This document shows, in pieces, positions 3,455 to 9,193 of a DNA stretch of 64,000 nt. The notes beneath the pieces are model-generated. The model was given only the letters and a program-made list of their open reading frames with translations, had not been told where the DNA came from and searched no databases. Made by a program: the position numbers and the translations under genes. The stretch lies in sequence record LR756504.1; one strand, written 5' to 3'. Each line of letters opens with the position of its first letter. The stretch's first letter is position 1.

Positions 3455-3520
3455 TTTCGTATAATTTTAACTATTATAACGTAAATATTCTATAAATGTT
3501 ATATAATATTTTTATAATTA

Positions 3521-4290: not shown

Positions 4291-4468
4291 CACCAATATC
4301 ATATAATTCTAAATGCGGATACTTCTTTTTGAAATATGAATCAACATCATTAACATTTTTTACATATACTTTTATACGTCCTTCATTATTATGTTTATCA
4401 ACATAATAAACCTCGAAACATTGTTTCTTGACAAATAAATTACTTAATATATCTAAAATCTTGCTCAT
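4274..4468 (-). CDS. Hypothetical protein
   Basis: 64-aa ORF overlapping the end of the M42 gene. Confidence 0.5.
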   Translation of the reverse strand: MSKILDILSNLFVKKQCFEVYYVDKHNNEGRIKVYVKNVNDVDSYFKKKYPHLELYDIGEKGSF

Positions 4469-5537
4469 CCTGTATATTTAAAATGGATTTGTAAATAAGA
4501 TTAATCACTGCATGAATATCATCCTTATGAACAGTTTCAACTGTAGTATGCATATACTTCAATGGAAGCGATATAAGGGCTGATGGAACACCTTCACCTG
4601 AGTATGCAAATGAATCTGTATCCGTACCTGTAGCACGTTCTCCAACGGCTCTTTGGAAAGGAATTTCATTAGCTCTCGCAGTATCAATAATAAGTTTTCT
4701 CAAATTGTTCTGAACAGCAGGTGCGTATTTCAAAACTGGACCCAATCCACACGCTAAATCACCACTAGCAATTTTATTATACATCGGTGATTGTGTATCA
4801 TGTGTAACATCAGTAACGATAGCAACATTAGGCTTAATGGCTCTTGAAATCATTTCAGCACCACGCAAACCAACTTCTTCCTGAACAGAATTTACAATAT
4901 AAAGTCCAAATGGAAGTTTATTTCCTGACTCATGCAACATTCTCGCAACCTCAGCAATCATGAAACCACCAATTCTGTTATCCAAAGCTCTACCTGTAAG
5001 GAACTTATCATTAAGAATTTGCATGTATTCATCGAATACTACAACCGCACCAATATGGATACCCATTTCTTCTGCTTCTTTTTTAGATGAAGCACCAATA
5101 TCAATAGTAAGGTTTTCAATCTTAGGTGGTTTATCATCACCTGTTCTTACGTGAACTGCTGGCCAGCCAAAAAATCCATCTACAACATCACCCTCTTCAG
5201 TGAAAATTTTCACTCTCTTAGATGGTGCAATAGTACAATCAGAACCACCATTCTTTTTAACGTAAAGATAACCTTTCTCGCTAATGTAACTAACTCTCCA
5301 TGAAATTTCATCAGCATGAGCCTCAATAACTACCTTATAAGGCGCATCAGGATTAATAATACCTACAGCAGTACCATAAGCATCAGTTTTAAATTCATTA
5401 ACGTATGGCTTTAAATAATCCATCCAAATTTGTTGACCACTCGATTCATACCCAACAGGCGAGAAGTTGTTTAAATACTGTTTCAAAAAATCAAAGCTTT
5501 CCTGCCTTAATCCCAACGTGCTTTTTGCTTTATCCAT
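4440..5537 (-). CDS. M42 family metalloaminopeptidase, Bacteroidota-like
   Basis: AHADEI, RALDNR, VQEEVGLRGA, VTDVTH, GTDTD, KYMHT motifs. Confidence 0.92.
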   Translation of the reverse strand: MDKAKSTLGLRQESFDFLKQYLNNFSPVGYESSGQQIWMDYLKPYVNEFKTDAYGTAVGIINPDAPYKVVIEAHADEISWRVSYISEKGYLYVKKNGGSDCTIAPSKRVKIFTEEGDVVDGFFGWPAVHVRTGDDKPPKIENLTIDIGASSKKEAEEMGIHIGAVVVFDEYMQILNDKFLTGRALDNRIGGFMIAEVARMLHESGNKLPFGLYIVNSVQEEVGLRGAEMISRAIKPNVAIVTDVTHDTQSPMYNKIASGDLACGLGPVLKYAPAVQNNLRKLIIDTARANEIPFQRAVGERATGTDTDSFAYSGEGVPSALISLPLKYMHTTVETVHKDDIHAVINLIYKSILNIQDEQDFRYIK

Positions 5538-6710: not shown

Positions 6711-7373
6711 TTACATACCCTTTAATATTTTCATCATAATATCATTATCTTTCTTTGCTTTCTCTTTATATGCAGTTTCACCTAAATCTATCATTTTATC
6801 TAAAGTCCTTTGTTCGTAAGGTTCTGTGTATCTATTTAATAATTTATTAATTTCTATTTTATTTTTAATCCAATCAATTTGTTGCTCCCATGTAAATTCT
6901 TTATTATGTATCGCCATTCTATGATATTTCCTACCTTTAATACCAATTTCTTTTATAAATTCACACCATTTATCTAAATAATTATATGATTTTATTGTTT
7001 GTACAATTTTAGCAATAAAATTATCATCAAGTTTAAAATCTGATTCTTCAATTTTATCTGAATATTGTAATATACCATCTTCCACCCAAATAACAGAAGA
7101 ATCCCACGATTTACCATATAGATTATCTTCATGTTGATTAAATATAATCCAAAATGCTAAATTACCATCATATTCATTAACATCATAATAATTAAGATAA
7201 AAATCTCCATATTGACATGTTCCAATTTTTAATGGCTCTTTTAAGAAAAAATGATATGTTTGTTCAAATCCGCATTTTTTAACTACTTCTTTTAAAAAAA
7301 ATATATTTTTATCAGTATTATCTATACGAAGACTTTCATTAATAAAATCTATAAATTTTTTAATATTTTTCAT
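6711..7373 (-). CDS. Hypothetical protein with capsid-targeting-like N-terminus
   Basis: Starts MKNIKKFIDFINES. Confidence 0.65.
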   Translation of the reverse strand: MKNIKKFIDFINESLRIDNTDKNIFFLKEVVKKCGFEQTYHFFLKEPLKIGTCQYGDFYLNYYDVNEYDGNLAFWIIFNQHEDNLYGKSWDSSVIWVEDGILQYSDKIEESDFKLDDNFIAKIVQTIKSYNYLDKWCEFIKEIGIKGRKYHRMAIHNKEFTWEQQIDWIKNKIEINKLLNRYTEPYEQRTLDKMIDLGETAYKEKAKKDNDIMMKILKGM

Positions 7374-7399
7374 TTATCTATTATTATTTTATGTATATA

Positions 7400-8581
7400 T
7401 TAAACCTTATCAATAGAAAACATTCCTAATTTCTTCAAACCTAATTCTAAATCCTCCATTAATGGTTTATACATCTCTTGGTTCTCAGGATTATCCTTGA
7501 TATGAAATTTCAAATACATCTGATTAATAGTTTTACACGAATCAATCAATTCATCAAAAAATATAGCAGGTGAAAAATTATCTTTCGCTTTTAAAAATTT
7601 AAACTTCATATGGAAACTATTAAAATCATCTTTCAATTCCACTTTCATACCAGCACTTTTTAATTTAGCTAAAGTATAACTAACATATAAACCATAACTT
7701 GTTTTCACATTAGCAAATTGATCTAAATCAATCTTCTTATCCGAACCAGGTGCATACTTCAAAAATTGACCAGCAATAACATTATAAACTAATTCTAAGT
7801 TATTAAATTCTTTCATAAGCATATCAATAACATCTTGCATCCATATAACATTACCAAGACTTGAACTCATTTTACCAAATGAATCTTTACTTTTAGCAAG
7901 TACTAATCCCAAACCGATATGCTTTATGTCAGGAAATATTTCTTTAAGTATAGAAAAGTGTGGTGCTTGTTCTAATCCTGTAATGTAAATAGTCGGAGCA
8001 TTTAATTTAGATGCTAATGCAACATCTTGATAAAAATATGTTGTAGCACCTGTTGATTTAATTCCAACTATTTTATTCTCACCTACATTAAATATTTTAG
8101 TTCCAATATAATCACCTTCACCATCATGTAATAATTCTTTATTATCTAACTCTTGATTTGATGCATAATAAATATCACCTACATTATAATTAAATTCTTT
8201 ACAATATGATAAATATTTATCGAATGCATCTTGCTTCTCCACTTTACCATCTAACGTATCACCAAGTATAGCGATAGTTTGTTCAGCATACCCAAAGTTT
8301 TGAATAGCTTTAGCTATAACAAGATTCGAGAGATGTCCAATATGGCAATATTTATTTAAATTTGGGCTGTAGCCATCTAAATATTTAAAATACGGAGTGG
8401 AAATAAAAAAATCTTCTAAATTAGAAGGTAGGCAAATATTTGTAAAACCTTTGCTTTCTTCGGTTTTAAATCCCCAAAAATTTATCCACTCCTGTATTTC
8501 ATGTTTTGGTTTTCCGTAAACACATAATCCGCTTCCGAACTGTTTAGGAATTATATTAATATCATTTATGCTAATTTTCAT
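7400..8581 (-). CDS. argS: Arginyl-tRNA synthetase-like protein (shortened, 393 aa)
   Basis: SPNLNKYCHIGHLSN (class I HIGH), KSTGATTYFYQDVA, GKMSSS (KMSKS-like), DALR-like C-terminal helical region; last gene of a tRNA unit containing tRNA-Arg. Confidence 0.8.
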   Translation of the reverse strand: MKISINDINIIPKQFGSGLCVYGKPKHEIQEWINFWGFKTEESKGFTNICLPSNLEDFFISTPYFKYLDGYSPNLNKYCHIGHLSNLVIAKAIQNFGYAEQTIAILGDTLDGKVEKQDAFDKYLSYCKEFNYNVGDIYYASNQELDNKELLHDGEGDYIGTKIFNVGENKIVGIKSTGATTYFYQDVALASKLNAPTIYITGLEQAPHFSILKEIFPDIKHIGLGLVLAKSKDSFGKMSSSLGNVIWMQDVIDMLMKEFNNLELVYNVIAGQFLKYAPGSDKKIDLDQFANVKTSYGLYVSYTLAKLKSAGMKVELKDDFNSFHMKFKFLKAKDNFSPAIFFDELIDSCKTINQMYLKFHIKDNPENQEMYKPLMEDLELGLKKLGMFSIDKV

Positions 8582-8596
8582 AATCTATTTCTTCTG

Positions 8597-8670
8597 TAGC
8601 AATAATTGGACTTGAACCAATAATCTCTGCCTTATGAGAGCAGCGTGTTAGCCAATTACACTATATTGCT
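8597..8670 (-). tRNA. tRNA with CAT anticodon (elongator Met or Ile2)
   Basis: Cloverleaf AGCAATA/TATTGCT, anticodon arm CTGCT-CTCATAA-GGCAG, T loop TTCAAGT; no initiator features; CCA not encoded. Confidence 0.88.
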
Positions 8671-8675
8671 ATTAG

Positions 8676-8747
8676 TAGTCTCGGTGTGAATTGAACACAC
8701 GACATCTTCCTTATCAGAGAAGCATTCTACCACTGAATTACGAGACT
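8676..8747 (-). tRNA. tRNA-Ile(GAT)
   Basis: AGTCTCG/CGAGACT acceptor, CTTCT-CTGATAA-GGAAG anticodon arm, GTGTG-TTCAATT-CACAC T arm. Confidence 0.9.
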
Positions 8748-8922
8748 ATTTATTTTTACTATTTCTTATTTCCAATCCATTCTTTTTTAATTCTTCAATT
8801 ACATAATACCAATCAACATTAATCGGTGGAGCATAATCATCATCATTAAAATAATGTTCTTCTATTACTATCTCTAAATGTGTAAATATTCTTTTTAATC
8901 TTTCCACTATATTTTTTTTCAT
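8746..8922 (-). CDS. Small hypothetical protein (58 aa) inside the tRNA unit
   Basis: Manual translation MKKNIVERLKRIFTHLEIV...NSKNK; exactly fills the gap between tRNA-Arg and tRNA-Ile. Confidence 0.55.
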   Translation of the reverse strand: MKKNIVERLKRIFTHLEIVIEEHYFNDDDYAPPINVDWYYVIEELKKNGLEIRNSKNK

Positions 8923-8930
8923 TACTCATG

Positions 8931-9003
8931 TACCCAATCCAAGATTCAAACTTGGACTAATCACTTAGAAGGAGATTGTGCTATTCAATTACACCAATCG
9001 GGC
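8931..9003 (-). tRNA. tRNA-Arg(TCT)
   Basis: GCCCGAT/ATTGGGT acceptor, anticodon loop CTTCTAA, CCAAG-TTTGAAT-CTTGG T arm. Confidence 0.88.
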
Positions 9004-9007
9004 ATAT

Positions 9008-9040
9008 AAACAAAAAACCCAAGCTTTATTTGCTTGGGTT
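9008..9040 (-). terminator. Attenuator terminator hairpin (Arg/Ile/Met unit)
   Basis: AACCCAAGC-AAATAAA-GCTTGGGTT followed by TTTTGTTT, ending a few nt before tRNA-Arg(TCT). Confidence 0.85.
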
Positions 9041-9069
9041 CGAATTTCTTTTTAAAAGACAATATTCTA

Positions 9070-9129
9070 TCACCCAAGCATTTTTGGTCTAATAATTCTC
9101 ATTCTAATAATCATTGCTATAGTTTTCAT
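9070..9129 (-). CDS. Leader peptide MKTIAMIIRMRIIRPKMLG (attenuator, Arg/Ile/Met)
   Basis: 19-codon ORF with nine consecutive Met/Ile/Arg codons; its 3' end (TGCTTGGGT) is complementary to the terminator 5' arm. Confidence 0.8.
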   Translation of the reverse strand: MKTIAMIIRMRIIRPKMLG

Positions 9130-9193
9130 AATATTATTTGTCTTATTCTTTAAACGATATAACTTATATATTGTTTTATTATTTTACTTTTTG

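Follow-up and report, generated by a model that had tools for sequence, protein, structure and literature searches.

Candidate leader-peptide attenuators in front of tRNA genes in a giant soil phage

The window analysed here is a 64,000-nucleotide stretch of the uncultured huge phage LR756504.1 (636,363 bp; 27% GC), in which window position p corresponds to record position p+124,000. A 288.6-kb assembly, G000, is a piece of the same phage, and WNFQ01000001.1 is another copy. The 23 masked N in the window were neither inspected nor filled, and none lies in the region studied. A group of three tRNA genes and a synthetase-like gene is preceded there by a short leader open reading frame and a strong intrinsic terminator, and a second, paralogous arrangement lies upstream of it. 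ARAGORN and Rfam searches agree on the tRNA calls. The features are:

11448-11640, minus strand: paralogous module 1, with an upstream box at 11640-11625, a leader ORF at 11606-11511 and a terminator at 11486-11460
9193-11447, minus strand: the unit of module 1, comprising tRNA-Thr(GGT), thrS (476 bits), tRNA-Asn, tRNA-Thr(TGT), an HNH ORF and tRNA-Arg(ACG), and running into module 2
9156-9171, minus strand: promoter-like box, a degenerate copy of ATATATACGTTATAAT, which aligns with the box upstream of module 1
9133-9144, minus strand: 5'-UTR segment AAGACAAATAAT, which can pair with 9053-9064
9070-9129, minus strand: leader ORF of module 2, 19 sense codons plus TGA (MKTIAMIIRMRIIRPKMLG), with the ATG at 9129-9127 and the TGA at 9072-9070
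9088-9114, minus strand: control codons 6-14, ATG ATT ATT AGA ATG AGA ATT ATT AGA (Met, Ile, Ile, Arg, Met, Arg, Ile, Ile, Arg)
9053-9080, minus strand: antiterminator 5' strand, with a 9-bp core TGCTTGGGT at 9080-9072 that shares its last base with the TGA, plus an extension
9031-9052, minus strand: antiterminator 3' strand, which includes the 5' arm of the terminator
9011-9041, minus strand: intrinsic terminator, a 10-bp stem with a 7-nt loop (9041-9015) followed by a T tract, dG -14.5, ending 7 nt before the tRNA
8930-9003, minus strand: tRNA-Arg, anticodon TCT (50.8 bits)
8746-8922, minus strand: ORF of 58 aa between the tRNAs, of unknown function and with no family match
8675-8747, minus strand: tRNA-Ile, anticodon GAT (68.1 bits)
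8596-8670, minus strand: tRNA with anticodon CAT, either Met or, if modified, Ile2 (69.1 bits)
7400-8581, minus strand: divergent, short ArgRS-like gene (393 aa)

The original prediction held that a 19-codon leader carries nine consecutive codons matching the anticodons of the three downstream tRNAs, that the end of the ORF pairs perfectly over 9 bp with the 5' arm of a terminator, and that the unit ends in an ArgRS-like gene; this observation is correct to the base. The segment TGCTTGGGT at 9080-9072 is the exact complement of ACCCAAGCA at 9039-9031. These features exceed chance expectation, as the run of nine Ile/Arg/Met codons is the single longest among 5,164 small ORFs of the whole genome, and the leader-terminator duplex has a predicted energy of -20.6 kcal/mol against -6.9 +/- 2.1 in shuffled sequences, none of 300 of which was as good. 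AGA, ATT and ATG are nonetheless common codons in a 27% GC genome, so that this module is less striking alone than its paralogues. The genome uses the standard code, with TGA as a normal stop: among ORFs of at least 150 codons, TAA ends 351, TGA 53 and TAG 40, and alternative codes were rejected because reading any stop as sense gains little ORF length. The leader has no Shine-Dalgarno (SD) sequence, but neither do the genes of the phage (4% against 5.7% in random 15-mers), and AAA is the commonest second codon genome-wide, so that the start context of the leader is typical of this genome; the lack of SD sequences fits a host with SD-independent initiation, such as Bacteroidota.

The description of the 393-aa product as ArgRS-like holds only in the sense of a divergent, short relative. 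The argS equivalog model TIGR00456 matches it at E 1.2e-7 but with 30.5 bits, far below the cut-off of 261.65, and Pfam tRNA-synt_1d matches at the HIGH region with E 0.003. Searches of PHROGs and PDB sequences with this protein alone gave nothing, whereas a two-sequence profile found mostly ArgRS chains in the PDB, although weakly (E about 0.1) and aligned on the SPN..K..H.GHL motif. We therefore refer to it as ArgRS-like, not as ArgRS. It has one other relative in GenBank phages, a 51%-identical orthologue in LR745206.1 that itself scores 39.1 bits with TIGR00456.

Alignment of the leader with that of module 1 shows several shared parts: the upstream box, a CTTGGG arm, a 20-nt box (9072-9053 and 11541-11522) and the terminator tail. 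The 20-nt box lies in different reading frames in the two modules, and is thus conserved as RNA and not as protein. A scan of G000 and then of the whole record yielded eight modules with the same order of leader ORF, antiterminator arm and terminator, followed directly by a tRNA or, in module 5, by an 80-aa ORF and then the tRNAs. Modules 1 to 6 also carry the upstream box or a degenerate copy of it, whereas modules 7 and 8 lack one and appear to be fed by read-through. The leader cores and what follows them are:

Module 1, TTIIRNMNNNINRTRTT: tRNA-Thr(GGT), thrS, tRNA-Asn, tRNA-Thr(TGT), tRNA-Arg(ACG), then module 2
Module 2, MIIRMRIIR: Arg(TCT), Ile(GAT), CAT, argS-like gene
Module 3, IAIVEIAVIGGAEEGV: Glu, Ala, Ile(TAT), Val, Gly, Glu
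Module 4, FWHFHF: a tRNA-like element with a Trp anticodon arm (record positions 309819-309891), His, Phe
Module 5, LSLCLSLSLSL: two Leu, Ser, Cys, Ser, Ser, two Leu
Module 6, KQDKQYQPQYD: Asp, then modules 7 and 8 (Asp, Tyr, Gln and Lys in all)
Module 7, KKQQYKQYQPQYK: Tyr, Tyr, Gln
Module 8, KKKK, written AAG AAA AAG AAA: Lys(CTT), Lys(TTT), Lys(TTT), a lysS-like gene (359 bits), Lys(CTT)

Modules 1 and 2, and modules 6, 7 and 8, lie in series, and the upstream leaders also contain the codons of the downstream blocks. In module 1 all of codons 2-18 are Thr, Asn, Ile, Arg or Met. Each leader thus holds a run of codons for the tRNAs, and the aaRS where present, that follow it. When each leader was scored against the amino-acid set of each cluster, the true pairing was the single best of 40,320 permutations, and for each set the leader's run was the top, or among the top few, of the 5,164 ATG-started ORFs of 12-45 codons in all six frames of the genome; the few other hits are homopolymer runs inside genes with no terminator. 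The 87 control codons of the eight modules also use rare synonymous codons more than the genome does, with a GC3 of 0.31 against an expected 0.16 (P<1e-4; none of 10,000 simulations was as high). The rare codons fit specific anticodons, as with the lone CGC (2% of Arg codons) in leader 1, whose unit holds tRNA-Arg(ACG), TCG with Ser(TGA), CTA with Leu(TAG), and alternating AAG/AAA with Lys(CTT)/Lys(TTT). In module 2 the codons are the common ones (AGA is 81% of Arg codons and ATT 51% of Ile codons), but overall this pattern points to sensing of tRNA species rather than of amino acids.

All eight modules have a canonical hairpin and T-tract terminator (dG -7.2 to -16.8), and in each a stretch in the 3' part of the leader ORF pairs with the 5' arm of the terminator and its flank. 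The energies of these duplexes are -14 to -28.5 kcal/mol, against -7 to -12 for dinucleotide shuffles; no shuffle of 300 reached the observed value in seven modules, and 8 of 300 did in module 4. The complementarity is module-specific, in that the diagonal of an 8x8 table of leader against terminator arm is again the best of 40,320 permutations, which serves as a covariation test across paralogues. Compensatory changes within the helices of module 2 itself were not counted, as no orthologue of this exact module was found: a search of IMG/VR with the ArgRS-like protein returned nothing, and of 53 metagenome loci with a ThrRS relative, 52 (24-59% identity) are not syntenic and carry almost no tRNAs, while the other is this same phage at 100% identity. 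In module 2 the antiterminator hairpin, at -17.4, is only 2.8 kcal/mol more stable than the terminator at -14.6.

The original prediction had staked its mechanism on a positional argument, namely that a ribosome reaching the stop would cover the antiterminator arm while one stalled on the upstream control codons would leave it free, and we examined this by folding with a ribosome modelled as covering A-site -15 to +12. Full-length equilibrium folds with a masked ribosome were rejected, as they allow helices that span the ribosome, and were replaced by truncated and downstream-only folds. When the transcript is cut before the 3' arm of the terminator, representing co-transcriptional order, the terminator's 5' arm is captured by the antiterminator with the A site on codons 1-13, partly captured on codon 14, and free from codon 15 to the stop. 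When only the RNA downstream of the ribosome is folded to equilibrium, the antiterminator wins for codons 11-13 only and the terminator from codon 14 on; the wider window of codons 1-13 thus relies on co-transcriptional order. The expected geometry is therefore seen in both models, with the change at codon 14/15, but with one refinement, as a stall on the last AGA would already partly cover the arm. Across the family the change from antiterminator, or disrupted terminator, to terminator falls at or near the end of the control run in six of eight modules in the co-transcriptional model (module 7 is less clear and module 8 shows no switch) and in seven of eight in the equilibrium model (module 4 shows terminator throughout). 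No classical 1:2 pause hairpin is evident; a pairing of 9144-9133, just before the start codon, with 9064-9053 forms in the minimum free energy fold of the naked leader, and whether this stands in for the upstream hairpin of the four-segment model is not settled by the folds. Both of its arms are conserved in module 1, and although its role is unexplained it may be an anti-antiterminator or may close the start site after the first ribosome.

A distant megaphage, LR745206.1 (634,780 bp), provides an independent replicate. It shares almost no alignable DNA with LR756504.1 and carries 61 tRNA matches in clusters, and it has at least nine leaders with the same logic, eight of the nine listed being upstream of those clusters:

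HKNFSKSHKWF, before His, Phe, His, Phe and Trp
KTKLKYK, before four Lys
SKSSSRSSS, before Arg(ACG) and Ser
SYESYYEE, before Glu and Tyr
ISIAVIGNGAGAI, before Ile, Gly, Met, Gly
a leader rich in Asn, Leu, Thr, Val, Ile, Met and Arg, before a 19-tRNA array of those identities
PVNPQPQDQDP, before Pro and Asp
QQIQQQQ, before three Gln
NNRNR, before asnS (414 bits) and the argS-like orthologue, with no tRNA between

The arm of the NNRNR leader overlaps its TGA just as in module 2. The true pairing of these nine leaders is the best of 362,880 permutations, which supports both the sensing idea and the Arg-related role of the 393-aa gene. A scan of IMG/VR for the terminator tail, which is itself generic, gave at least 38 terminator-tRNA junctions with about two dozen distinct leader sets among the loci examined; roughly a quarter of those loci sit directly before tRNAs and carry matching leaders, and several of the leader sets show clearly matching leaders. 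One has the core TQHTQRFTPFFCEEP before Glu, Pro, Cys, Phe, Thr, Arg, Gln and His, another has QQQQQQ before two Gln, and others are leaders that sample nearly every amino acid before arrays of about 20 tRNAs. A blastn search with one IMG/VR module against GenBank phages gave no match, and thus no cultured model phage was identified.

We conclude that 9171-9004 on the minus strand most likely acts as a ribosome-mediated transcription attenuator that gates tRNA-Arg(TCT), tRNA-Ile(GAT), the CAT tRNA and the ArgRS-like gene, and we place the probability of this reading at about 0.82. The interpretation offered in the original prediction is thus supported by everything that the sequence allows to be examined, although it captured only part of the pattern. 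In the proposed mechanism, RNA polymerase enters from the box at 9171-9156 or from the upstream Thr/Asn unit, and a ribosome loads on the 19-codon leader. If aminoacyl-tRNAs reading AGA, ATT and ATG are plentiful the ribosome would run to the TGA and cover TGCTTGGGT, such that the terminator folds and transcription stops 7 nt before the first tRNA. If any of those tRNAs is scarce the ribosome would stall within codons 6-13, leaving the arm free to pair with ACCCAAGCA as soon as that is made, so that the terminator cannot form and the tRNAs and the synthetase gene are transcribed. Because the products are the molecules whose shortage causes the stall, the loop would be a negative feedback on decoding capacity for the commonest Arg and Ile codons of the phage. 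The ORF, the codon-tRNA match, the terminator, the exclusive alternative pairing and their recurrence are read directly from sequence, whereas translation of the leader, termination and its efficiency, the response of read-through to tRNA or amino-acid supply, and the promoter are inferred. None of these was measured here, as the only sequencing runs found were four DNA runs from soil metagenomes, one of which alone holds the stretch in full, and none was an RNA run; nor were the host or the RNA polymerase identified. Why phages carry tRNA genes, and how they dose them, is a long-standing question, and these leaders suggest a direct and testable answer in which the phage measures decoding capacity codon by codon with a ribosome and transcribes the matching tRNAs on demand. 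The leaders also supply a sequence rule for annotation, since their codons predict the identity of unusual or uncalled tRNAs and divergent synthetases downstream, such as the Trp-like element after the FWHFHF leader and the ArgRS-like gene after Arg-codon leaders in two phages, and they offer compact, programmable codon-specific sensors for synthetic biology.

Of the alternatives, the one that survives best, although it is unlikely, is that the leader is translated and senses these codons but the regulated step is not intrinsic termination, and is instead Rho access, precursor processing or stability, or a general readout of ribosome availability or amino-acid starvation. Stalling reports aminoacyl-tRNA, which depends on amino acid and charging as well as on tRNA amount, aaRS genes sit in three of the units, and the terminators lie right at the RNase P site of the first tRNA. 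However, all eight modules have canonical terminators and exclusive antiterminators, and codon choice matches individual isoacceptors. A translation-independent RNA switch, in which the codon run or the alternative helices are read directly by tRNA, as in a T-box, or by a protein, is somewhat less likely still. Its logic resembles T-box control of aaRS genes, and the helix between the 5'-UTR and the post-ORF segment and the 20-nt box shared with module 1 are conserved as RNA, but no T-box or other Rfam family matches this module at E<=1. In all 17 or more modules the run is in frame with an ATG in the usual start context of the genome and stays open in DNA where stops are frequent, runs of many different codons do not fit a single specifier, and the switch point follows ribosome position. 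It is also improbable that the hairpin is an ordinary terminator or insulator ending the tRNA-Arg(ACG) unit and the ORF a chance open frame in AT-rich DNA. A terminator after a tRNA gene is unremarkable, the control codons are made of common AT-rich triplets, and promoter-like matches are no more frequent than in shuffles; yet only 7 nt separate the T tract from the next co-oriented tRNA, leaving no room for a promoter, and neither the recurrence of the layout in two genomes with codons tracking the tRNAs, nor the unique codon run, nor the antiterminator complementarity fits this view. Least likely, the 19-aa product is itself a functional small hydrophobic, basic peptide, which the complete ORF and good start context would allow, but the peptides differ completely between modules except for the first residues and vary with the downstream tRNA content, and no family match was found for neighbouring small ORFs either.

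The closest system by target is the Escherichia coli pheST attenuator, in which the short pheM leader peptide ORF, rich in the cognate codon, and a terminator/antiterminator pair control an aminoacyl-tRNA synthetase operon. Three units here also carry an aaRS gene of a sensed amino acid, but the first and main regulated genes are tRNAs, the setting is a phage, the leader of module 2 senses three amino acids, and there is no detectable sequence relation. The closest by multivalence are thrL (Thr and Ile codons) and the ilvGMEDA leader (Ile, Leu, Val), in which one leader holds codons for several amino acids and works through ribosome-position-dependent alternative hairpins. Module 1 gives a weak hit to the Rfam family Thr_leader RF00506 (28.6 bits, E 0.03), far below the gathering threshold of 55, and module 2 gives none; the regulated products here are decoding components, not biosynthetic enzymes, so that the product itself would relieve the stall, the leaders are combinatorial and arranged in series, and the anatomy has three segments with the antiterminator arm inside the ORF or over its stop. 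T-box riboswitches likewise regulate aaRS and related genes by antitermination in response to the status of a specific tRNA, but they bind uncharged tRNA directly through a specifier codon and the T-box bulge, without translation; no match to the T-box (RF00230), with its Stem I specifier loop and conserved antiterminator bulge, was found at E<=1 in 7000-13500, and the element here is an in-frame ORF. Arrays of tRNA genes, often with homing endonuclease and aaRS genes, occur in the large AT-rich genomes of T4-like, jumbo and huge phages, but full-text literature searches found no report of leader-peptide attenuators in front of them, and the only papers naming this accession concern a marine megaphage and mention the record in passing. 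Ribosome-mediated attenuation is thus a known mechanism, and what is new is its apparent application to phage tRNA arrays; this would be the first case known to us of tRNA genes under leader-peptide attenuation.

A broader reading, which we regard as tentative, is that large phages wire their tRNA arrays as a cascade of codon-specific, isoacceptor-resolving ribosome sensors, such that each block of tRNAs, and its aaRS, is made only when decoding of its own codons falters. Such shortfalls could arise when the AT-rich phage message load outruns the host pool, when the phage degrades host tRNAs, or when host anticodon-nuclease defences cut them. On that reading the leaders would be a built-in homeostat and counter-defence trigger, and a widespread, undescribed regulatory class in phages that use Bacteroidota-type, SD-independent translation.

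The core of the promoter-like box, ACGTTATAAT, occurs only five times in 636 kb, and three of those lie 18-20 nt before a leader ATG. Its promoter function is inferred, and module 2, with only a degenerate copy, may also be fed by read-through from module 1. A pattern scan of IMG/VR with the box gave only generic AT-rich hits. Many of the IMG/VR loci with terminator-tRNA junctions carry TAnnTTTG-type boxes, and in the window a box of this type lies at about 12765-12750.

Two paralogous tRNA-like genes, at window positions 12122-12197 and 12393-12467, have an irregular anticodon loop (CTTTTCAG) that is 8 nt long if the stem is taken as 4 bp. ARAGORN reports the first of these as 'tRNA-???', whereas the second is called only by Rfam (32 bits). 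Similar oddities are seen elsewhere in the full record, with reported anticodons of 'tcta', 'tt' and 'at'. We note that these could be frameshift- or stop-reading tRNAs, although the genome uses the standard code. Two further tRNAs depart from the usual form in another way, in that tRNA-Thr(TGT) and tRNA-Asn(GTT), at window positions 10028-10115 and 10121-10208, are 88 nt long with a large extra arm, which is unusual for these identities; the phage LR745206.1 also has Lys, Asn, Arg and Leu tRNAs of 84-92 nt.

The phage also contains elements that resemble tRNAs but are not called as such. One is a tRNA 3'-half-like sequence, with a T arm of GTTGG-TTCGAAT-CCAAC, that lies next to an open reading frame with an HNH endonuclease match (Pfam HNH, E 0.004); the two are located at window positions 9312-9440 and 9451-9984. 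This may be a tRNA gene that has been disrupted by a homing element, and HNH-like open reading frames are also present inside two other tRNA arrays of the record. A second element is located at LR756504.1 309819-309891 (positions 9819-9891 of L021, a segment of that record), between the terminator of module 4 and tRNA-His. It has good acceptor and T arms and a perfect Trp anticodon arm (ATGAT-CTCCAAA-ATCAT), and the leader upstream of it contains one TGG codon, but neither ARAGORN nor Rfam calls it as a tRNA.

The synthetase genes of the phage are short. The thrS gene (window 10215-11375) encodes 386 aa and matches model positions 171-559 only, and it thus lacks the N-terminal part; the lysS-like gene (record 398748-399884) encodes 378 aa and the argS-like gene (window 7400-8581) encodes 393 aa. 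In LR745206.1, a leader (MKTMTINNRNRLTDII) with a terminator, at approximately 390375-390484 (positions 176-285 of L273, a segment of that record), precedes asnS and the orthologue of the argS-like gene with no tRNA between them, and in this view the same device would therefore also control synthetase genes alone.

Across all eight modules of LR756504.1, the control codons are enriched in rare G/C-ending synonymous codons that match particular downstream anticodons (GC3 of 0.31, against 0.16 expected). Two of the leaders hold a CCG codon, although ARAGORN found no tRNA-Pro in the genome.

The fifth exact copy of ACGTTATAAT in the genome, at window positions 3455-3483 (record position about 127473), lies upstream of the 75-aa open reading frame at 3454-3227 and is not associated with a tRNA; it may mark another transcription unit of the same promoter class. 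A box of the TAnnTTTG type, the Bacteroidota -7 motif, is present at window positions 12750-12765, upstream of the open reading frame at 12728-12474 and at the head of the whole tRNA region, and the LR745206.1 modules carry the same kind of box. Finally, a gene for an M42 glutamyl aminopeptidase (Pfam E 1e-73) lies near the tRNA region at window positions 4440-5537, and peptidase AMGs have been mentioned for this group of megaphages (PMC9723777).
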